Shown here: positions 35,919-47,947 of the stretch, one piece after another
How the letters are laid out: each line of letters opens with the position of its first letter
How positions within the stretch are numbered: the first letter of the stretch is position 1
Source of the DNA: Syncephalis fuscata S228
Lineage: Eukaryota > Fungi > Zoopagomycota
Direction: 5' to 3'
DNA length: 64,000 nucleotides
Assembly (NCBI GenBank): GCA_025786725.1
Contig: JAHLTZ010000009.1
Coordinates: 62,001 to 126,000, forward strand
The notes under the pieces: generated by a model
Database searches by the model: none
What the model was told of the DNA's origin: nothing
The model's input: only the letters and a program-made list of their open reading frames with translations
Program-made: the position numbers and the translations under genes

Positions 35919-37181
35919 ATGTCTCGCTACACTATGCTGGTGACTTTATTGGTGGCAGCTACGATGCTGTCGGCCAGTCCAGCTTTAGCACAGGATGCTA
36001 AGATCTGCAATGGTTCGGCCGATATTGCCGTCTTCCCTATACCGATACACATTTGCCGGTACTCACAACTCGGCCGCTTATGGACTAAGACCCGACTGCA
36101 CAAACATTGAAAAGTGTGATGGTGCACAAAACTTCTGCGTTAAAAGCGAACAACAATGCACTGGAGGTTGGTCCGAAAAGTGCGAAAATACGAGCAAGGA
36201 GTGTGCAAATAAATTGCCAAAATTCCTCGGCGGTTTATGTACTGCCTGGAACACCGTGTGCAAGTCCCCTAACAAAGTATGTGGCGCTTGGAGCACGGCG
36301 TGCAAAGAATCAGTCAACATGTGCAACAAAGGACTCCCCACTATGTGCAAGAATGCTCCAGGATGGATGCGCGAATGCTTTTGGGAAAATCAGCCTAATC
36401 ACGACATTGGTGCTCAGTTGAACGATGGTATTCGTGCATTTGATATTGATACCTGTGTATTGGGTGATGGCAGTGTTGTTACTTGTCATGGTATGGGACC
36501 TTCACGTGCTCTAGGCAGTCCACTCGACAACCATCTAACTCAAGTGCGTGACTTTTTAAAGTCACATCCTAATGAGGTCATTACACTTGAATATAGTGAT
36601 TATGACGGTGATGCCGCAAAGATTGCTGCAATCATTAAGCAAAAGCTTGAAGAATATTTGCCAGGCAAAATGCTTGAACGCAAAAGCAATAGCGATCCTT
36701 GGCCAACACTTGGTGAAATACTTGGACAAGGCAAGCAAGTAGTCGTTTTTTTAGGTCGTCAAATTCCTTCCTTCCCTGATGGTAAGGCTCCAGCATGGGC
36801 TAATGATCGTTTTTCCACTTACGCAAGCACTTGGGCTACACGAATAATGCCCATGACGAAAAGGCAGTGGCTGCGGCAATGATTGATTACGCTAACAAAA
36901 ACGACGGCAAGTCTAACTTGTGGCAATGTCTTGACTTTGAATATTCTCCCGACAAGAAAAGCATTATGGACGATGTTAAGCAGTTAAGACAGCCGGCTCT
37001 TTGCTTAAAGCGTTTGGCCAAAAACATAAACGCACAAATGGATGCTGTATCCAATGCCTACGGCGCCAAATTTCAAAGCATCCATCGTGTTCGCGTAGAC
37101 TATTACTACAACGTTAAAGGGCAGCTACTTAAGGTAGTTGAGCGTTTAAATGCACGTGCTGTAAACAGCATTAAAGCATAG
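35919..37181 (+). CDS. Secreted PI-PLC-like phosphodiesterase with Cys-ladder insert, paralog A (intronless)
   Basis: Signal peptide, CNGS, TFAGTHNS, NQ..QLNDGIRAFDID, VTCHG, PNEVITL, WPTLGE and RVDYY. Two apparent frameshifts (~36030, ~36835). Confidence 0.85.
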
Positions 37182-37824
37182 AAGACTCTTTGGCTCAGTA
37201 CTTATGAATTAATCCATCTTAATGAATTTTATTAAATTTGAATAAACTAATGTCTATGTTATTGTTCCTTGATATTTACTTCAAACATACTATATCATTT
37301 ATTATAATCAAATGGTATTGCAATTGATATTGCATTGATAATAACTTTTATAAATTAGCGTTGGTTTTTTTACATTCTATATATATTATTTAAATAGTAT
37401 ATGCAACATATTATTAAATGTATTGCTACAATTAACTAAATACATAAATATTTGGAGGTTTAATTTAAGCCTCGTTGCATTTATTGTATTTTAATTTTTT
37501 CCATTCAAAACCTTACTCAACAAAACTGTCATCACTGTTAAAATGAGCGCAAAATAGAAAAAAGAACCATGTTTATATACATACACGTTTAAGTTGTAAT
37601 TATACACTTTTTAATACTGTTATTAATATTCATTATAATTTTGTGTGGTTGCAGCAAAAGCGCTTGGTATTTCACATATTCAAGTTATATGCATAGACAA
37701 GGCTAGACCTAAAACCAACTTTGTTAAGACGCAGTCTTAAGCCATGTACTTGACTTTTGTATATACTAGTACTCGAGCTCAATGACTAAAACGCACACAT
37801 GCCATTTTTACTTTGACCTACAGT

Positions 37825-39684
37825 ATGCATACTCTATACTACCAAAAATTAGGCATAATTTTTATTATTTGTTCGTTAATACAGTTTAAATCACCAGCGC
37901 AAACACTACTCTTATAAATGAGTTAGGCAATACGGCTTTTCGTTAAATAACCATTTTTTTATTTGCGGTCTTATTATCGTTATGAAGGCATGGGACTTCT
38001 GTGAGATCTTGAATACAATGACGCAACCGACACCTGCCACTTTTTACCAATCGATGAAAGCAACCTACGTCTTCAACTAGCAGCTAAATAGTTTACTAAA
38101 TATCCAAACTTTGCACTATTTATATTTTACCATACTCCTCTAAATCTATACCGCAAGAAAACAGCAATTCTAGCTGTCATAAAAAAAGTTTACTTACATG
38201 TTTTAGATGGCTGAGTCATTAGGCCGTCTTATGCAGCAACTAACAAGAAATGGATTTCCACTAATCAAACTACTTATTATAGACAAGGACTTTACTTCAA
38301 ATTCTGGATTTAAAAATGACTACATTATGGGCTAGAATGTGCAGCAATACTATGATACGTTAGTTAAATATAGTCCTGTTAAGATTGCAATAATAAATGA
38401 AAGTACTTATATGCTCGAAAGTCAGACAATGATTAAAGGATTTACGGCTTTCCGTTACATCGCCAAACAAGGTAATTGCTCATTATCTTATTATTATTCA
38501 TCGTTAACTTTTCAATATAATCCAGTCCATGGTATGGCATACTTATATCGAAGGGACACATTGCTTACAAAATCACGTATTCTGCAATAGTAAGTAAACA
38601 ACAAGCTGATTGTAACTGATGCTAATTTTACTCACACAAATATTGTTGGTTTTATTATACGCATGTGTTCGCGTCATAATGTTAGCTAAATTGAAAATTT
38701 TGCATTTGAATCTACTTTTAGTATCGTTTATTGTCACCGTTATATATTGCATATGTAGGTACTGGCAATACGTTTAGTGACTAACAACTTATGTGTATGC
38801 ATTAGTTCTTTAATGCATCTGTCTATTCTATATCGGCCGTATATAGCAACTGGATTGCATACCATATACACAATTATATCAGATACACCGTTTGATTTAA
38901 TACTGTGGCATTGGTGTGTAATTAATGTAGCTTAATAACTTGAACTAACAACCGAAAGGTCAATTGTTAATAGAAATTTATTTTCAAAAAGATCTATTAT
39001 ACTACTTCGTTCAACTGTTATACTAAATATTACTCCAAACATTACTCGCATCCTATTTATAATAGTAAACAATAATATGCGTATTAATAAATATAAAATG
39101 TTGTTTAAAGTTTAAATGACTACTTATGCTGTTATGCTTGCATTATCCTGGTTCAATACTATTTTTTTGGTGGATTTGGTAAGTTGAATGTATATTATAT
39201 AAGCCAACCAGTATAATATAACCATTTATTAGCAACATGGTTTGGAGTAAATGCCTATAAACTTAATAATCTCCCTGAAGGTCTTTATCGGTTTATCAGG
39301 ATAAGTAGCAGAATAAAGCAATATGCAAGATATACTAATAGTCATATGCTCCATTAGTTAAAGCTATTTGCATTACTGGGCTTTGCTGCATATATATTAT
39401 TTACAGTATGTTATACTACCAACATTATTGACAAATATTGGTTATCAACTGCCAAAATACTTGCAACAATAGCTGTATTTAATACACCACGTATGTTACA
39501 CGCACTCATATTTTTAGCAATATTTAGCCTACAATGGCCACAGCCAAAAGAGGCCGCTAAAGAAGATCGAATACCACTTGGTGGAATGACAACTATTGAG
39601 TTCCATACAACTACTGAAACAAGGTCATTACATAAACAATTGACTCGTAAATTTGCACAAATAATCAGAAAACAAACAATTTAA
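37825..39684 (+). pseudogene. Pseudogene of a large-ectodomain multi-TM (7TM-like) protein
   Basis: Coding-like frames (YYRYEGMGLL*DLEY..CHFLPID..AAK*FTKYPNFALFI; QLTRNGFPLIKLLI...G*NVQQY; PFDLILWHW) are interrupted by in-frame stops at 38002, 38089 and 38333. The 3' half is hydrophobic. Confidence 0.55.
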
Positions 39685-40081
39685 ATAATTAAGGATTATT
39701 GGTATAATCATTAATAGTCAATTAATAAAATAATCGCTCTTTATCTCATACATACAATAGCTTTCATTATTTTATTTTTATTTTAATAATTATATTACAA
39801 CAATCATATGAGTCAACGTGTATAATACTGATAATGGCTACAAAGCAAGTAGATTAGTATTTTATTTTGATTTAAATCCCATTGCAAAAGTTCACAAACT
39901 CACAATTTTTAGTTTGTTTAAACTTTTTACAATTTTTAGCGTGCAAAAAAAGCGAATTAATAATTACCAAATATGTTAATTACATCACTAAGCATCCAAA
40001 AATAGACTCATCAAGAAAAACTCCCTTAGTAATTTACTTTTAACTATTACAACTGCTCATTCTATAATTATCGTTTTGTTT

Positions 40082-43000
40082 ATGAGTGATTACAAATATG
40101 AAAGCATAAATAATCAATTAAACTCAGTCAGTACACTTAATATGTCCAATAACGAAGGTCCTGATCTCACCAGTGACGAAGATGATGGGCCGCACCCATT
40201 TAAGCCGAAGCAATCCCCAGCCTTGAATTCAAATACTACCAATAGTGATAGCAGTAGTAGTAATACTAAAGAAATTAGTGTGCTGCCTATTGGTAGAGGA
40301 AGCGCTGCAACTGTAGGAATGGAAAATACAGAACTGCGCAATCGTCGGTATCCTACGACAGATACAACACAGCAGTATGAAAATCCAATGCCCATGATTT
40401 CTACTAGTCATTCAAATCAATGGAATTCACTGGAACGGGAAATCACTGGCTATGATTCTATTTATTCCGAGGCAGCCATGGCAGCAGCAGCAGCAGATGT
40501 AATACGTAATGTACATCGCACTGCACTTGAAAACAATCAGCCCACACTACTATCGGCTCAGCATAAAAAGTGGAAAAAGCATTATAACTGGTTGCGGCAA
40601 TGGCTACGTGATGTATTTGAACCGACAGTGTTGCGACGTGCCACTAAAGGATCGATGCTTTTCTTTATAGCGATGTTGCTTGTATTGATTAAACCAGTTG
40701 CTCATGCATTAGGCCGATCAAGCTACCTAATTATGATTTCGATCATTCTGATTCAGCCAGCTCGTCCTATTGGTGCGCATCTAGAAGCTACAGTGCTTAG
40801 TGTTGTTGCGCTGGTACTGGGTATTGGTTACTTGGCTGGTGCGCTTAGTATTAGTGCAGCTGCCAATGCAGCGCAAGTTCGACGTGGTGATGATCCTAGC
40901 GATGGCCGCTGGATTGCCATGGCTTTTCTATTATTTGGTGTATTCTGGGTGACGTGGATACGAGTACGTTTTCCACGTCTTTCTCAACCAGGTCATTTTG
41001 CCATTCTTACTATGGCATTCGGTTTGACAAAGGGCACTGCTGTAACATCATTTCAGCCCATAGTACTTTTTAATATTGGCATTCCTATTATATTGGGAAT
41101 TGCTCTTTCCTTAGGCGTTAACTTGTTTATTTTTCCAACTACAGCAAGTGATCTTAGAAGGTGAATTTAGTAAATACAGTAGTAATTGTGCTAATACACC
41201 AATACACGCTATAGAACGGCTACGACAAAAGCAATTAAAACGATCAAAGTACAGCTGATTCAGACAACTAGTGAGTTTCTGGCTCCTTCGCTTGAAACGA
41301 TCATTAATACGCCAAATCCATCACGTCGTCAAAGCACTAGCAATATCGGCCTAGCCTACAATGTATCGGTGTTACACTCGACCAAGACACGATCAGAACG
41401 TATTGATGATTTAATTAAGACCAAGCATCAGCTATCATTATCTATTCCATCATTAGTGGATTTAACCAAACATGCAGTGTATGAGGTCAATATTGCTCGC
41501 CATAATCCACGGGATTATAAACGGCTTTCTGGCGTACTAGCTGGTATTCAGCAACATCTGGCCAGTATGGTATTAGCGCTAAGAAGAGAGGAGGAATGGA
41601 TGCAAAAAGAAATGGAGATTGCTCGAATGGCACAAACTGAAAGTGTACAACCAATGAGATCTCCATCCCTCGAGGAAAGTACCTACGATAGCTCAATACT
41701 ATCTAAAGATCTGGGCCGACGATTAGGCCGAGTTACAATTAGACAACGTTTACAAGGAAGAGGCGATATTATATTACTTGCTCATATGGTTGATTTAACG
41801 CGTGACGCGGCACTTAAGCTAATGGAGGCATGTACGAGCATACTGGATTCTATGCATGATACAGTCGAACAAGATGTGTTTCCACAATCTGACCTACGGG
41901 CCATTTGGATACTGCTTACTTCTTGGATGCCCTTCCGATGGGCACAAGCAGCAATACCAGCTATAGAATTGGAAGAGGGCCATAATCGCCAAGAACAGCT
42001 GAATCAATTACTTGACGATGCACTTACCTTTTACGATATAGCAGAAAAGGATTGTATACGAGAAATGTATTCTCATTCAAAGCTAATTGGGCAGCGTGAA
42101 GAGCATTTTTTAGCATTTGGTTTTATTTATTCACTAAGAGAGATTGCCATGAAAATGCGGGAACTATTAGAGTTGGAGCCACGATTTTCGGTAACGCCTA
42201 ACTGTAGACAATGGCAAATCTGGTGGCCAAGTGTTGGTATTAGAAAATGGTTGCGTCGACGAGAAGATAGCGCAGAAGATGTTATTAATGGCGGCAATTA
42301 CATGGAATATGGTAAGATAGATTGCTGTTACTTGTATTTATCTAATTAAATAGTAATCGCTAGCGGAACGATTATGCGAAACAACCGAAAGAGCCGTAGA
42401 CGACGAGCAAACAAGAAAGCAAAATGCACGCTGGGCAAGAAAGAGAAACAAACGTTTAAGTTCACAACAAACGATGCACCAGCCAAGAGGTAGCCGGGTA
42501 CGCTTAACAATATGGCATATGATCCACTGGTTTCAAGGCTATCGGGTGAAATTCGCGTTTAAAATGATGCTATGTACATTTGCTATATCATTGACTGGTT
42601 ATATCAATGCAGATACCGACGCATTCTTTCAGAATGTGCATGGGCAATGGGCATTAACAACGGTATGGAGTAATTAGCAAGTGTTACTACCACGGCTAAT
42701 ATTTGAACATAGGCACTTTTTGTTCTTAGTATTGATATGGGTTCAACGTTTCTTTTGGGATTGTTTCGTTTGTTGGGTACTATATTTGGAACAGTTTGGG
42801 CAATATTTATTCTATCAGTTACTGAGCGTGAAAGTCCTTATATTATTGGCGGTCTAATGATGTTACATGGTAAGTATTGCGCGTAATACCATTAGAATTG
42901 GTGGTTAATAACACTTAATATTGTCGGTTTACTAGGTGTTATTGCTTGGAGAATGATGTACAGTCCAAAGACGCTACGTTTTGCCATTGCCTCGTTACTT

Positions 43001-43983
43001 ACCATATCATCAACTGTGCTTGGTTTCTACACCGGTTCGTACGCAGGACAGGATGTCATTCTTATTTGTCTTTATCGTGGTGCCGGTGTCTCTATTGCAC
43101 TACTTGTATCAATTACTATTCACCAACTTTTCTGGCCATTTTTTGCACGCAATGAGCTACGTAAACTACTTAGTTTATTGATTCATGAACTAGGACAAAC
43201 ATATGCAATGATTTCATCACTGCGACTTGTCGATCGCACTGATGCAGAATATCCAACAGTTTATACCAATGTTGAAAAGAGAATACATCTACTGCAGAGC
43301 GGACTGGTACGTGCCAATGAGCTATTGACGGCTGCAACCTCCGAACCTCGTTTAAAAGGACCATTTCCAGCTGATGTTTATCTAAAACTAATCCGTGCCA
43401 TGCGAGATAGTGCTGCATGGCTAGTAAGTATGCGATCAGCGGCACTTCAATCTCATCCGGCCAATGTGCGCCGAATTCTATCACCAAACATTTCGGCTCA
43501 TAGAGATTTGGTAAGTAGCTAATAAAGGCATTGTGATAAATAATACTCCAGTATACTAATAATAAATGGATGGCTAATTGGTATTAGACGGCCGCCGTGC
43601 TCCTGTACTACCACGTTGTGTCAGGTTCGCTACGTTCTAAACTGCCGTTGCCTGCCTATCTACCTTCGGCCCGTGCTGCTCGTCGACAAGCACTGCATTC
43701 CACATGGCCGGTATTCGAGTCGTTTAGTCCACGCGAAGACGAGCTGCGAAAGGGAAAAGATATAGCAGCATCGCCCAAGTCCATCAAATCAGACGACAAT
43801 ACTCCTGAATCGTCATCATCATCGCCGCTTTATGAGATATCCGACTCAGCCGGCATGCGTATGGCCTATTGGTTTGCCTACTCAGCTGGTCTATCTGAAC
43901 TGATTCGCGAACAAGAGAGACTGGCAAGTTATGTACAAAAACTTATTGGCGTTGATGAATTGATGGCATTTCATCTTGAGTAG
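40082..43983 (+). CDS. ArAE/FUSC/ALMT-superfamily membrane transporter (Bre4-like architecture), multi-exon
   Basis: Two TM clusters, each followed by a helical cytosolic domain. Motifs PARPIGAHLE, VNLFIFP, KFAFK, GQWAL, RLLGTIFG, LFWPFFAR, EPRLKGPFP and PLPAYLPSAR. Confidence 0.85.
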
Positions 43984-44119
43984 TAATTTATTTTTTTAAT
44001 TTCTAGATTTCATACAATTTTTAATAGATCATATATTTTATTTAATAATAAAGCGATTAATATTGTAAAAGTGGCAATTTGATTATCAAGTTATTTAAGT
44101 ATTTATTGTTTTGTTTGAT

Positions 44120-44565
44120 AGTCAAATGACTAATATTTAATAACATCCAATCTATTGAACATGATGATGGGTGGTGAGTGACATTAGCCATCAAATACTC
44201 ATTATTGTAGATTCATTATCCAATATGCATATATCCACCATTTACCTATATCATTCCCATTTTATCCCATATTACTATATATCATTTAGCAAGTTATATG
44301 TAATTGAAGCATAAAGAATATAATTTATTTAGTATAGTATAAAATGATATATAATGGCATAAGCATACATTGTTAATAATATAGGTAAATAGAGGATGTA
44401 TGAATACTGGATAATAAATCTATAATGATGAATATTTTGATTCATGACGTCACGCATTGCCCAGTTCCATGTTTAATAGAACAAATGTGTAGTATGACCG
44501 CGCAAATAGTATTAAATGTAGCCATTTGACATCAAATCACACTAAATTTCTAGTAAATTGTTTAA
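44120..44565. repeat. Inverted pair of the dispersed repeat core (foldback hairpin)
   Basis: Plus arm ~44120-44260 (AATCTATTGAACATGATGA...GTAGATTCATTATCCAATATGCAT). Minus arm ~44380-44565 is the reverse complement of the ~340-560 type. Confidence 0.7.
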
Positions 44566-45003
44566 TAATATTTAATTTACACTTGCCTTAATGTTATTAT
44601 TTCACCTATGGTCATTATGTAAACTATTATGTTTTGTTTTCTAAATATGAAAAACTAGCGAAAGCAAATACAACTAAAGAATGTTCGAATGTTACCTTGT
44701 ACTCGTGAGACGAACTGGCGCCGTGCTTATTCTCAATAGGCCTTGAGTGGGTATGTAGGCCATCTTGAATGGAAATGCACGTAGTGTGGGGTTGTGATAC
44801 TCTAATACCAGTAAAAATAATTTTTAGAGGTCAGCTGAGTTAACAAGCTTAAGCATCGTAAATAAATATAAACACTTAGTTTGCCAGCCGAAAAACTTCG
44901 TTTTTTAGTGCCGCCACCTTCGTTTTAACGACTTCATCCAATACCAAAGTATTAGTTTATTACGACTAACATCAAGCGTGTTATTTATTGATTTTATTTA
45001 GTT

Positions 45004-46328
45004 ATGACAGTTATGAATTTATTTGTGTTATTTCTCGCAGCGGCCATTAGCAGAGTACCTATGCTAGCTGAGGCTGCGACCAGCTGCAACGGTTCGTCAA
45101 ACTACTGCCAGCTACCGTTTGATCGCTACACTTTTGCTGGTACGCATAACTCGGCTGCTTACCATCTAAAGCCGGATTGTACACTGGCAACTGGTAAATG
45201 TTCTAAAGCCATTGGCACCTGTATTGAGACTGGCTCCAAATGTTCCCAGCCATGGCGCGAGAAATGCCGTGAAACTCAAGAAAAATGTAATAGCAAGGTG
45301 CCACCATGGCTGGGCAAAGTGTGTGACACGTGGGGCAAGACATGCACGGCAACAAGCCGCTTATGCGACGGCTGGACCGACATCTGCAAAGTGCCACTAC
45401 AGGCATGTTCAGGTAGTGCGCCGATTATCTGTAACAATGCACCCGAATGGTTTATGAAGTGTCTGTGGGAGAATCAGCCTGGCAAAGACATTAAACAACA
45501 GCTGGCTGATGGTAAGTAATATGTAATATAAGTGTATTATTATATAATAATTAATCTTATTTAACTATTAGGTATTCGGTCGTTCGACATAGATACCTGT
45601 GTGACTCATGATGGAAATGTTGTCACTTGTCATGGTATGGGCGTCACACGAGCGCTAGGTGATGGCCTAGATGTTCATCTTCAACAAATAGCCGAGTTTC
45701 TTAATGCAAACCGAGATCAAGTGATTGCCATCGAGTATATGGATACAGATGGTGATACTGCCGTTATTGCACGCGAATTAACTGCGCTATTAAACGCCAT
45801 TTAAACGGTCGACTATGGGAGCGTTCGTCGACTGCTGAACCATGGCCAACTCTTGGGCAAATGATTGATATGGGCAAGCAAGTAGTGATCTTTTCAGGTT
45901 CTATTGCCGACTCGCTACCTGGATCCGCTCGTCCTGCCTGGATTCATAATCGCGATAGTTACTATCGTAACACTTGGAATTACGCTAATGGTGCGCACAG
46001 TCCCAATCAAATGGCCGATATTATGCTGGCATACAACCCATCGGGATCCGATGCCGATCGCTGGCAATGCGTTGACTTTGAATACTCTCCCGATAGCAAA
46101 ACACTGCTTGAACAAATGAAGAATGGAAATATTCCTAGTATTTGTTTGGAACGTCTAGCAACCGACATGAATCGACGTGTGCCCGAAGTTGTAAACAAAT
46201 ATGCAGATCGTTTTCGACATGTACATCGTGTTCGTGTAGATTATTACTATAATGCTAAAGATCTGTTATTCAACTCGGTAAAAAAGATGAATGCACGTAA
46301 TTTCCAATTATTTGCTCGCCCGCAATAA
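45004..46328 (+). CDS. Secreted PI-PLC-like phosphodiesterase with Cys-ladder insert, paralog B
   Basis: Same motifs as paralog A. Intron 45512-45571 and one apparent frameshift at ~45800. Confidence 0.87.
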
Positions 46329-46523
46329 AGGCCCGCAATAATAGTATTTATTTATTATTAAATATTGGCTAGTATTTAAATTCAAGGGGGTGTTATCTAT
46401 ATATCGCCCCTGGAGGAGAAATAATAAATTTATATTACAATGTCCTTATAATAATTCTGATTAATAACTTTCTATACTACGATGCCTCTACAGTAATTTT
46501 AATTGACAACCTTTTGTATTAAA

Positions 46524-47947
46524 ATGTATCAAAGTTCTATTATTTACGCTTTGTGTATTTTTCTGTGCATCGATATTGTCGTTCGTGCCAATACATTGAG
46601 TCGACGCACTGACACCAATTGCAACGGAAGTACATCTTTGTGTAACTTACCATTTGACCATGTAACTTTTGCTGGCACTCACAACTCGGCTGCATACCAT
46701 TTGAAGCCCGAGTGTCCTCAGACACTAACCAGCTGTGGCGGTAGTGAACAATCTGTGTGTCAGAACACAGAACGTCAATGCTTAGATGGATGGGAAGAGA
46801 AGTGTACACAGTCTACTCAAAGCTGTAAATCCAACTTGCCAGAAATATTATCGTTTCTTTCAGTGTTTTGTACAGTATGGGAAGACACCTGTACATTAGC
46901 TGAGAATGTGTGCAAAGGATGGCAACTAGTATGTACTAAAACAGTAAAAGCCTGTTCCACTGGAATCAATTGGATGTGTGAAGCTACACCAGACTGGCTA
47001 AAAGATTGTGCATGGCAAAATCAGGCCAATCATGATATTGCCCAACAGTTAAATGACGGTAAGAAATAATATGGTTTATTTAAATTGATTAATTAACAAT
47101 TACAATAATAACAATAATAACAACAATAATAATAATATAGGAATACGTGCACTTGATATTGATCTTTGTCTTGATAAGATGGCCAGTTGGTAGTTTGCCA
47201 TGGTATGGGAGAATTACGTGCACTAGGAGCCGGTCTTGTCGAAGTATTAGGCCAAGTAAAAACTCACTTAGAAACAGTACCAGATACAGTGCTTGCCATT
47301 GAGTTTGGCGATGTGGATGGAGACAAGTTAAAAATTGCTCCTCTTTTACGCGATACGATTAAAGAACAGCTCAGTGGCTATCTTATCGAACATCCCGATT
47401 CCAATTCAACATGGCCAACCCTTGGTCAGCTTATTGCTAAAAAACAACGTGTAGCTATTTTTGCCAGCGACTGGATTAACACATTAACTGATACTGAAAG
47501 ACCTGCGTGGCTACTATCTCGTGGAGATTATTAATTGGTAGTTGGAGTTATACAGGACAGCGCCATACTGCGGATGAGGTTGTTGCTGCACTACACGAAC
47601 ATGTCAATGCAGCAAATAACAGCAATCAGAAGATGGAGTGCCTTGACATGGAGTAAGTAGTTTGTTTGCATAGTTATTTATTTATTAACTCATACTTGGT
47701 GCATTGTAGATTATCGCCAAATATAGACGGTTTTCGAAATAAGATTACGCAACTTACCGATGTCTGTTTGCCAGATCTAGCAATGTCAATGAACAAGCAT
47801 ATTATTTCCATTGCTCAAGAGTATATTGCAGTCAAGAAACGCGTCCATCGCATACGTATCGATAATTATTGGACTGTTTTACCACAACTGTTAGAGGCGG
47901 TTTCGCTGTTAAACGATATGAATCTGACATCCAATGAAAATTATTAA
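46524..47947 (+). CDS. Secreted PI-PLC-like phosphodiesterase with Cys-ladder insert, paralog C
   Basis: Same motifs as paralogs A and B. Introns 47059-47140 and ~47653-47709, with apparent frameshifts at ~47180 and ~47530. Confidence 0.85.

Follow-up and report, generated by a model that had tools for sequence, protein, structure and literature searches.

The window analysed here, a stretch of 64,000 nucleotides from the fungus Syncephalis fuscata S228 (contig JAHLTZ010000009.1, positions 62,001 to 126,000; Zoopagomycota, Zoopagales, Piptocephalidaceae), carries three neighbouring genes on the + strand, genes 1 to 3, that encode proteins resembling a phospholipase C specific for phosphatidylinositol (PI-PLC), with a cysteine-rich insert present in each. 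The question raised by this locus is what the insert is, and what it could do for a secreted enzyme of a fungus that lives as a mycoparasite on mucoralean and mortierellalean moulds. The original prediction, made from the DNA sequence, took the insert for a disulfide-stapled helical hairpin with a membrane-inserting or target-binding tip, and the proteins for a possible lipid-attacking effector system of a parasite. The analysis reported here points to a predicted disulfide-zipped hairpin that takes the place of a known membrane-anchoring helix and that is also found well beyond parasitic fungi and beyond PI-PLC-like enzymes.

In all three genes, an insert of ~95–100 residues with 13 cysteines lies between the motifs THNSAAY and W-E/Q-N-Q, as counted by a script on alignment A1. 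The cysteines of genes 1–3 follow spacings of 5/6, 6/7, 6, 7, 6, 11/14, 6, 6, 6, 6, 7 and 9 residues in this alignment, and the same 13-Cys pattern is found in relatives from Syncephalis plumigaleata, S. fuscata and Thamnocephalis. All cysteines are invariant, as are two tryptophans (W30 and W95 of the insert alignment). Outside the cysteines, the paralogues share 17–45% identity in the insert versus 40–64% in the rest of the protein, which makes the insert the more rapidly diverging part of the two. A profile restricted to the insert recovers relatives from 1.84 billion representative proteins at E-values of 1e-35 to 1e-10, and the pattern is therefore far beyond chance. In homologues from Dikarya and metagenomes that lack the insert, the same motifs are separated by 14–16 residues, in agreement with the expectation that this loop is normally short.

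The ladder was initially described as having 13 cysteines, of which 12, arranged as 6+6, can be retained. The thirteenth (C13) lies outside the mirror symmetry of the others, is kept by animal homologues without the insert in the motif S-C-W-Y-R-N-Q, and is invariant in alignment A5. Because C13 is conserved where the insert is missing, it is a cysteine of the protein core, and the ladder proper comprises 12. The two halves of the ladder are joined by a tip loop, with the sequences first quoted for it, that measures 11 residues in most proteins and has a consensus of basic residues followed by L/V-P-x-W/F-L/F-x-x-L/W/F-C; the tip of gene 3 is longer (14 residues) and more hydrophobic. The hydrophobic character ascribed to the tip is thus found across contexts in the form of basic plus aromatic or hydrophobic residues, and in every context the basic residues and the L/V-P-x-W/F-L/F segment are the best-conserved feature apart from the cysteines. 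When the ladder is defined by equal numbers of heptad-spaced cysteines on both sides of a ~11-residue tip with L/V-P-x-W/F-L/F, it is present in the three window genes and in 26 of the 26 other sequences of alignment A4.

The remainder of the protein corresponds to the enzyme that had been anticipated, a PI-PLC-like TIM barrel with both motif histidines kept. Searches and folding used single-frame gene pieces or intact orthologues such as P0002 of S. plumigaleata, the orthologue of gene 1 (77% identity). The family profile (A3) matches Listeria PlcA (2plc, E 8.8e-13) and Bacillus PI-PLC (1gym/1ptd, E 9e-10) in the PDB. The AlphaFold2 model of P0002 has a mean predicted local distance difference test score (pLDDT) of 86.8 and a predicted template modelling score (pTM) of 0.81, with the barrel blocks mostly at 80–98. 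A Foldseek search with this model places bacterial PI-PLCs on top, with 3v1h, 1aod and 1ptd at probability 1.00, E-values of 4e-6 to 1e-4 and template modelling (TM) scores, by target, of 0.5–0.6. In the motif alignment, T-H-N-S falls on G-T-H-D of the bacterial enzyme (His32), D-G-I-R on G-A/I-R (Arg69), C-H-G on H-H-G/Y-H-G (His82), and V/I-D-Y/N-Y on M-D-F (Asp274), and the equivalents of these four residues are present in all three window genes. The position of Asp33, the partner of His82 in the general-acid catalysis of Bacillus PI-PLC, is occupied by Asn in each of the three genes and in most other members of the eukaryotic family. Judged from profile, model and motifs, the catalytic part belongs to the (β/α) barrels of bacterial PI-PLC type. 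None of the Y, EF and C2 domains of a eukaryotic Ca2+-dependent PI-PLC is found by Pfam in the single domain of ~420 residues, and the structural matches of the P0002 model to PLC delta, beta and gamma are partial only, with Foldseek TM scores of 0.2–0.3. A protein database lists precomputed PF26146 and PF26178 matches for the family, which were not returned by our own Pfam scan.

Leaders that fit the secretion assumed at the outset are present in all three genes. Each protein opens with a hydrophobic, signal-peptide-like segment with a small-x-small end, which is followed by a conserved C-N-G-S..C motif containing an N-glycosylation sequon. This start has the usual appearance of a secreted protein, and the products look secretory.

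The profile alignment shows that the insert opens exactly at residues 38–47 of Bacillus PI-PLC (l-q-n-p-i-k-Q-V-W), which form helix B. Helix B and two neighbouring loops constitute the interfacial binding site of the Bacillus enzyme, and helix B, with its critical Lys44, is the deepest anchor in the bilayer (PMC4816757). From its position, the ladder thus replaces a known membrane-anchor element. The Dikarya homologues without a ladder carry a hydrophobic GPI (glycosylphosphatidylinositol)-like tail at the C-terminus, whereas the ladder-containing forms are devoid of it.

A long helical hairpin, as originally proposed, was returned by two AlphaFold2 runs. In the full-length model of P0002, the insert folds into helices 67–102 and 105–140, the second of which is kinked, with pLDDT values of 57–87. 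The module of gene 2, modelled with a ladder-only alignment of 29 sequences, consists of helices 7–45 and 48–91 with a mean pLDDT of 83. Quite apart from structure prediction, the number of cysteines in these 29 sequences is equal on either side of the tip, with 6+6 in the PLC-like proteins, 5+5 in P0051, and 8+8 or 9+9 and 11+11 in two further protein families, B1 and B2, which are described below. The position sums (i+j) of nested partners are near-constant in each sequence, varying by ≤3 residues in the ladders of PLC and B2 proteins as well as in the inner B1 rungs, with a drift of up to 9 at the outermost B1 rungs. Because the cysteines are mirror-symmetric about the tip, six nested inter-arm disulfides, from C6–C7 out to C1–C12, are the natural pairing, and the proposed stapling of the arms is consistent with this pattern. 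Position a of the heptads is Cys, position d alternates Trp with Thr/Ser, and at position g of the second arm Val is found in 99 of 148 rungs; the first arm is otherwise rich in Glu, Lys and Gln, a composition that fits a coiled coil. The insert is predicted to be an antiparallel two-helix hairpin with arms of 39 and 44 residues, a length of ~6 nm if the helices are ideal, and six disulfide rungs.

The search of the 1.84 billion representative proteins with the insert-only profile found 36 proteins, ~30 of them genuine, that fall into three groups. P0046, P0052, P0057, P0059, P0062 and P0063 were rejected as simple Cys-containing repeats. The first group comprises PLC-like proteins with a full ladder from Zoopagales, Mortierellomycotina (Podila, Gamsiella, Gryganskiella), Glomeromycotina (Ambispora, Entrophospora) and the amoeba Paradermamoeba levis. 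Shorter PLC forms exist as well, with 1+1+1 Cys in P0010 and P0012 of S. fuscata and 2+2+1 in Geosiphon, in one Ambispora protein and in the chytrid Powellomyces. The second group, B1, consists of secreted-looking proteins of ~870–1100 residues from eukaryote-like contigs of soil or peat metagenomes, with a ladder of 16–18 Cys near the C-terminus that runs into flanking helices and whose central part closely resembles the ladder of gene 1. The third group, B2, contains protist proteins of ~770–1530 residues with an N-terminal ladder of 22–23 Cys (11 rungs) and a conserved region of ~450 residues. A Pfam scan of three B2 members found PAN/apple domains in P0038 and P0041, and also Laminin_G_3 in P0038, and B1 gave no Pfam match. 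Sequence searches of the PDB with B1 and B2 proteins gave no match, and for the B1 protein P0036 a homologue search by word index retrieved a single relative. In a tree built from the ladders alone, those of the fungal PLCs group in one clade (support 95/92) and the two non-fungal PLC ladders lie among the B1 ladders, although the alignment is short. This distribution does not support two expectations of the original prediction. The module is not special to a parasitic fungus, as the same PLC and ladder architecture is shared by saprotrophic Mortierellomycotina, Glomeromycotina and a free-living amoeba, nor is it tied to PLC-like proteins, given its presence in the two unrelated protist architectures.

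The members of B1 are P0036, P0045, P0054, P0055, P0061 and P0042 (loci L008–L010), and their neighbouring genes include WD40, PTEN-C2, kinase and EF-hand genes; those of B2 are P0034, P0038, P0039, P0041, P0049 and P0050. A 2-rung PLC-like protein of Ambispora gerdemannii (P0082, 816 residues) is fused in its model to a region of several membrane passes for which a PF03824 match is precomputed, which is either a real fusion or a merged gene model. Metagenome homologues of ~700–730 residues, probably bacterial (P0107, P0118, P0130 and many others), include several with a precomputed DUF308 (PF03729) match or with the source name HdeD/DUF308 membrane protein. These annotations suggest a membrane-tethered version of the enzyme.

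The insert was originally not recognised as a described domain, and the searches agree with this view. The module drew no Pfam match, whether the scan was made on exon pieces, on full-length orthologues, on the isolated insert or on the non-PLC carriers, and neither Pfam nor the PDB gave a specific match that would make it a known domain widespread in PLC-like proteins. Shape searches with the ladder model (Foldseek against the PDB, ESM-Atlas, and VIA wide) retrieved generic helical hairpins only, at 1–16% identity. A literature search, whose coverage excluded most subscription journals, yielded no account of the insert, nor of this family in Syncephalis. Relative to the Pfam copy, the PDB and the literature that were searched, four things therefore look undescribed: the ladder itself, the arithmetic of its rungs, its placement at helix B and its presence in unrelated protist proteins. 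The enzyme family is known under the name 'PLC-like phosphodiesterase'.

A comparison with known systems shows where the enzyme and the ladder agree with them and where they differ. The Syncephalis proteins share with the secreted bacterial PI-PLCs (Bacillus cereus/thuringiensis 1ptd, Listeria PlcA 2plc/1aod, Staphylococcus aureus 3v16) a single-domain (β/α) barrel, the four catalytic equivalents, a secreted look and an interfacial element right after the first catalytic His. They differ from them by an identity of 15–19%, by Asn in place of Asp33, by a Cys-laddered hairpin of ~95 residues instead of helix B (~7–10 residues), and by the additional N-terminal C-N-G-S..C motif. The eukaryotic members without a ladder (P0016, P0026 and P0030 from Dikarya, P0084 and P0085 from animals) are related at E-values of 1e-9 to 1e-28 and have in common PF26146/PF26178 and the motifs CNG..C, THNS, NQ..QL.DG.R, CH and WPTLG; by contrast, they contain the short loop at the ladder position and, in Dikarya, the GPI-like tail. 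CHCH proteins (twin C-x9-C) and plant alpha-hairpinins (C-x3-C ... C-x3-C) are 35–60 residues long and consist of two antiparallel helices with two inter-helix disulfides. The ladder is predicted to resemble them in having two antiparallel helices tied by inter-helix disulfides, but its C-x5-7-C spacing departs from their twin motifs, and it has 6 rungs (up to 11 in relatives) and a conserved aromatic tip. Generic long hairpins, such as ROP, the AcrA hairpin, Esx/WXG100, ESCRT-III and SMC arms, are similar in overall shape (Foldseek TM 0.5–0.6, VIA Z 8–9), values of Z that are expected for any long helical pair, but they are devoid of a Cys ladder and show the low identity mentioned above.

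We further analyzed whether the three genes are intact, since the original prediction had ascribed breaks in their reading frames to indels. Three of the breaks are real GT..AG introns, while the other six are indeed single-letter frame changes, within ~3.9 kilobases of coding sequence (three in gene 1, one in gene 2 and two in gene 3). As a transcript check, contigs of one public run (X1, 2017) were compared with the window. The X1 contigs lack all three introns at their GT..AG borders, and one of them stops ~40 nucleotides past the stop codon of gene 2, with nothing beyond except sequencing-adapter letters; the contigs therefore behave as transcripts. At each of the tested frame changes, namely 45785, 47178 and 47533 in genes 2 and 3 (3/3), the contigs contain one extra letter. 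Genes 2 and 3 are thus transcribed and spliced, and their frames are open. Letters identical to gene 1 are present as loose ends of an X1 contig. The three tested frame changes are most likely assembly errors. Differences between isolates are a less likely cause; the X1 contigs also differ from the assembly by eight substitutions between 45414 and 47571, all of them transitions (T>C, A>G, C>T, G>A), which may be allelic or strain differences or errors. The NCBI model of gene 2, P0008, named 'PLC-like phosphodiesterase [Syncephalis fuscata]', equals the gene 2 product except for one badly modelled stretch in which 16 residues around 45785 are omitted. P0008 and P0032 dodge the frame changes and hence miss residues, and the recorded protein of the window, P0001, is cut short at 295 residues. 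These data suggest that one-letter errors are frequent in the assembly, which would distort or truncate many gene models.

How the ladder serves the enzyme is best weighed from its position, its tip and its geometry. In the reading that we favour, and to which we give an even chance as a whole, the proteins are PI-PLC-like enzymes whose ladder acts outside the cell as a rigid spike that docks to membranes or surfaces. The spike would be stable to oxidation and proteases, and its cationic and aromatic tip, possibly together with the Trp/Val face, would attach the enzyme to a lipid interface or some other surface. In doing so, the ladder would take over the role of helix B and perhaps also that of the C-terminal GPI-like tail, and the docked enzyme would cleave an inositol-phosphate lipid head group, from phosphatidylinositol (PI), GPI anchors or inositol-phosphoceramide. 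Membrane insertion of the tip, attack on GPI or other lipids and an effector role, all contained in the original prediction, may be inferred here as possibilities. Several observations weigh against the docking-spike reading. A spike of ~6 nm at the rim of the active site would keep the active site several nm from the membrane if the tip alone inserted, and therefore either the hairpin must lie along the surface or the target of the tip is not lipid. The replacement of Asp33 by Asn leaves room for a different chemistry, or for a protein that may only bind its ligand, and the PI-PLC-X family PF00388 remains below its gathering threshold of 23.1 bits in Pfam (22.1 for the gene 1 piece, 19.1 for P0002). 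In addition, the second arm reaches a pLDDT of only 57–76 in the full-length P0002 model, the arms contain residues that are less than ideal for a helix (Gly-Gly, Thr, Ser, Val and some Pro), and the mature proteins have 19 Cys, an odd number that leaves one free or in an intermolecular bond.

The same odd cysteine would suit another explanation, possible but on balance doubtful, according to which the ladder serves for rigid spacing, for oligomerisation or for protein or glycan binding, and not for lipid anchoring; the hairpins would pair as a four-helix bundle, perhaps fixed by this cysteine, or the tip would bind a wall or surface ligand. The ladder has as structural neighbours generic hairpins (ROP, Esx, ESCRT-III, SMC, AcrA), most of which function in bundles, a 6-nm rod (~11 nm in B2) has a poor geometry for a simple interfacial anchor, and the module is present in multidomain extracellular proteins with PAN and Laminin_G_3, where a ligand-binding tip would suit the adhesin-like B2. 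This explanation is opposed by the insertion in place of the membrane-anchoring helix B and by the basic and aromatic tip, which is of a type typical of interfacial binders and whose conservation is unmatched by any other non-Cys feature. A specific use as a host-attack effector system that cuts PI or GPI lipids of the host mould appears unlikely. It would draw on the secretory-looking leaders, on the fact that bacterial PI-PLCs are virulence factors (PMC4816757), on the placement of gene 2 within a high-depth transcript contig, depth being a poor measure, and on the expansion of the family, with ~11–12 loci in the S. fuscata assembly, six of them with the ladder (three here, two on contig C1 and one 100 kilobases away on the contig of the window), and at least 6 members in S. 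plumigaleata. This expansion fits a use at the host interface, of which it is no proof, but the identical architecture of the proteins of saprotrophs (Podila, Gamsiella, Gryganskiella), arbuscular mycorrhizal fungi (Ambispora, Entrophospora) and a free-living amoeba indicates that the ladder did not arise for mycoparasitism.

The fold itself could have been misjudged, although this is very unlikely. Beetle Cys-rich antifreeze proteins are β-solenoids built of 12-residue T-C-T coils, and the insert might be some other disulfide-rich fold, such as a solenoid with intra-coil disulfides like theirs, in which case alignments of too little depth would have produced the AlphaFold helices. Thr, Ser, Gly, Val and Cys abound in the arms, which show a super-repeat of 14–15 residues, the pLDDT of the insert in the full-length model is moderate, and the alignment comprises 29 sequences only. 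However, the same hairpin emerged from two independent AlphaFold2 runs, with the higher confidence for the ladder-only alignment, the first arm is rich in Glu/Lys/Gln with a/d periodicity, and the matching cysteine numbers to either side of a conserved tip, seen for five rung counts, together with the near-constant i+j sums, are what is expected for a hairpin and not for a solenoid. The ladder period of 14–15 residues, the AlphaFold2 helices, the mirroring of the arms about one tip and the lack of a Pfam match likewise set it apart from the beetle proteins. The notion that the genes are decaying pseudogenes, with a pattern that has no present function, is the most improbable of all; it would be suggested by the six single-letter frame changes and by a true pseudogene of the family elsewhere in the genome, and it is rejected for genes 2 and 3 on the transcript-like contigs, which are correctly spliced and restore the frame at every site tested. 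All cysteines and catalytic residues are conserved, and each gene has an intact orthologue in S. plumigaleata. Beyond the docking spike of the PLC-like proteins, the module may represent an autonomous class of extracellular domain, a disulfide-zipped antiparallel coiled coil of 1–11 rungs with a cationic and aromatic tip that was repeatedly grafted onto proteins of Amoebozoa, other protists and early-diverging fungi. It would serve as a long-reach probe that penetrates membranes or surfaces and, in the PLC-like proteins, would deliver a barrel that cuts lipid head groups to the surface of the target cell; we advance this generalization tentatively and would sooner expect it to fail than to hold.

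The window is eukaryotic in composition, with ~36% guanine plus cytosine and short GT..AG introns, and the features of the three genes are collected in Table 1. Gene 1 is paired with P0002, gene 2 with P0006 and gene 3 with P0033 of S. plumigaleata, in which a single contig contains all three orthologues; both the paralogues and their linkage are therefore older than the species split. By these comparisons, genes 1–3 are old paralogues. Between D-G and I-R, genes 2 and 3 have a phase-1 intron in common (45511/45572 and 47058/47141), and gene 1 has no intron at the corresponding place, 36424–36435. The intron was either precisely lost from gene 1 or gained after the duplication. Elsewhere in the assembly, two ladder copies at C1:577963-579036 (-) and C1:606715-607787 (+) lie ~28 kilobases apart in opposite orientation and have identical ladder scores, the second with a frame change; they may stem from a recent inverted duplication. 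A family member at C224:189710-190475 (-) contains six in-frame stops and is apparently a true pseudogene, unlike the window genes.

Table 1. Features of the three PI-PLC-like genes (positions in the window)
Feature	Position	Strand	Remarks
Gene 1 (paralog A), PI-PLC-like	35919-37181	+	intronless; three reading frames used as assembled (open reading frames, three-frame translation)
Gene 1, signal-peptide-like leader	35919-35990	+	hydrophobic core, A-L-A end, ~24 residues; read from the translation
Gene 1, two single-letter frame changes	36020-36050	+	NGSAD, RYCRLPY and YRYTFAGTHNS in three successive frames
Gene 1, THNS motif	36061-36072	+	His equivalent to catalytic His32 of Bacillus PI-PLC; Asn at the place of Asp33
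Gene 1, ladder proper C1-C12 (6+6 Cys)	36097-36348	+
Gene 1, tip loop, C6 to C7	36202-36240	+	11 residues, K-L-P-K-F-L-G-G-L type
Gene 1, C13, core Cys	36376-36378	+	directly before F-W-E-N-Q; outside the ladder
Gene 1, D-G-I-R (Arg69 equivalent)	36424-36435	+	uninterrupted; intron here in genes 2 and 3
Gene 1, C-H-G (His82 equivalent)	36484-36492	+
Gene 1, third frame change, near 36834	36830-36838	+	open reading frame 35995-36882 overlaps 36831-37181 in another frame; orthologue P0002 continuous here
Gene 2	45004-46328	+	one intron, 45512-45571
Gene 2, exon 1	45004-45511	+	leader, THNS, ladder, NQ..QLADG
Gene 2, ladder proper C1-C12	45178-45432	+	tip loop 45286-45324; C13 45460-45462
Gene 2, intron	45512-45571	+	GT..AG, phase 1, between D-G and I-R; skipped by X1 contig
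Gene 2, exon 2	45572-46328	+	one single-letter frame change, 45785
Gene 3	46524-47947	+	two introns, 47059-47140 and 47653-47709
Gene 3, exon 1	46524-47058	+	ladder C1-C12 within 46698-47009; tip 46824-46871
Gene 3, intron 1	47059-47140	+	GT..AG, phase and site as in gene 2; X1 contig joins 47059 to 47144 beside a skipped repeat
Gene 3, exon 2	47141-47652	+	single-letter frame changes at 47178 and 47533
Gene 3, intron 2	47653-47709	+	GT..AG; absent from X1 contig
Gene 3, exon 3	47710-47947	+	I-D-N-Y (Asp274 equivalent) and stop codon

If the prediction is true, the ladder would constitute a new structural solution, a hairpin zipped by six disulfides, and by up to eleven in relatives, at the site of a bacterial membrane anchor. 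The coexistence of paralogues with 1, 2 and 6 rungs would then amount to a natural experiment on the interfacial targeting of an enzyme, and the module would offer a compact, very stable and length-adjustable scaffold for protein engineering. As a domain family absent from the searched Pfam copy and the PDB, it links the secreted enzymes of early-diverging fungi with large uncharacterised surface proteins of amoebae and other protists. For Syncephalis, the expanded and expressed family of secreted enzymes provides candidates for the poorly understood biochemistry of mycoparasitism.

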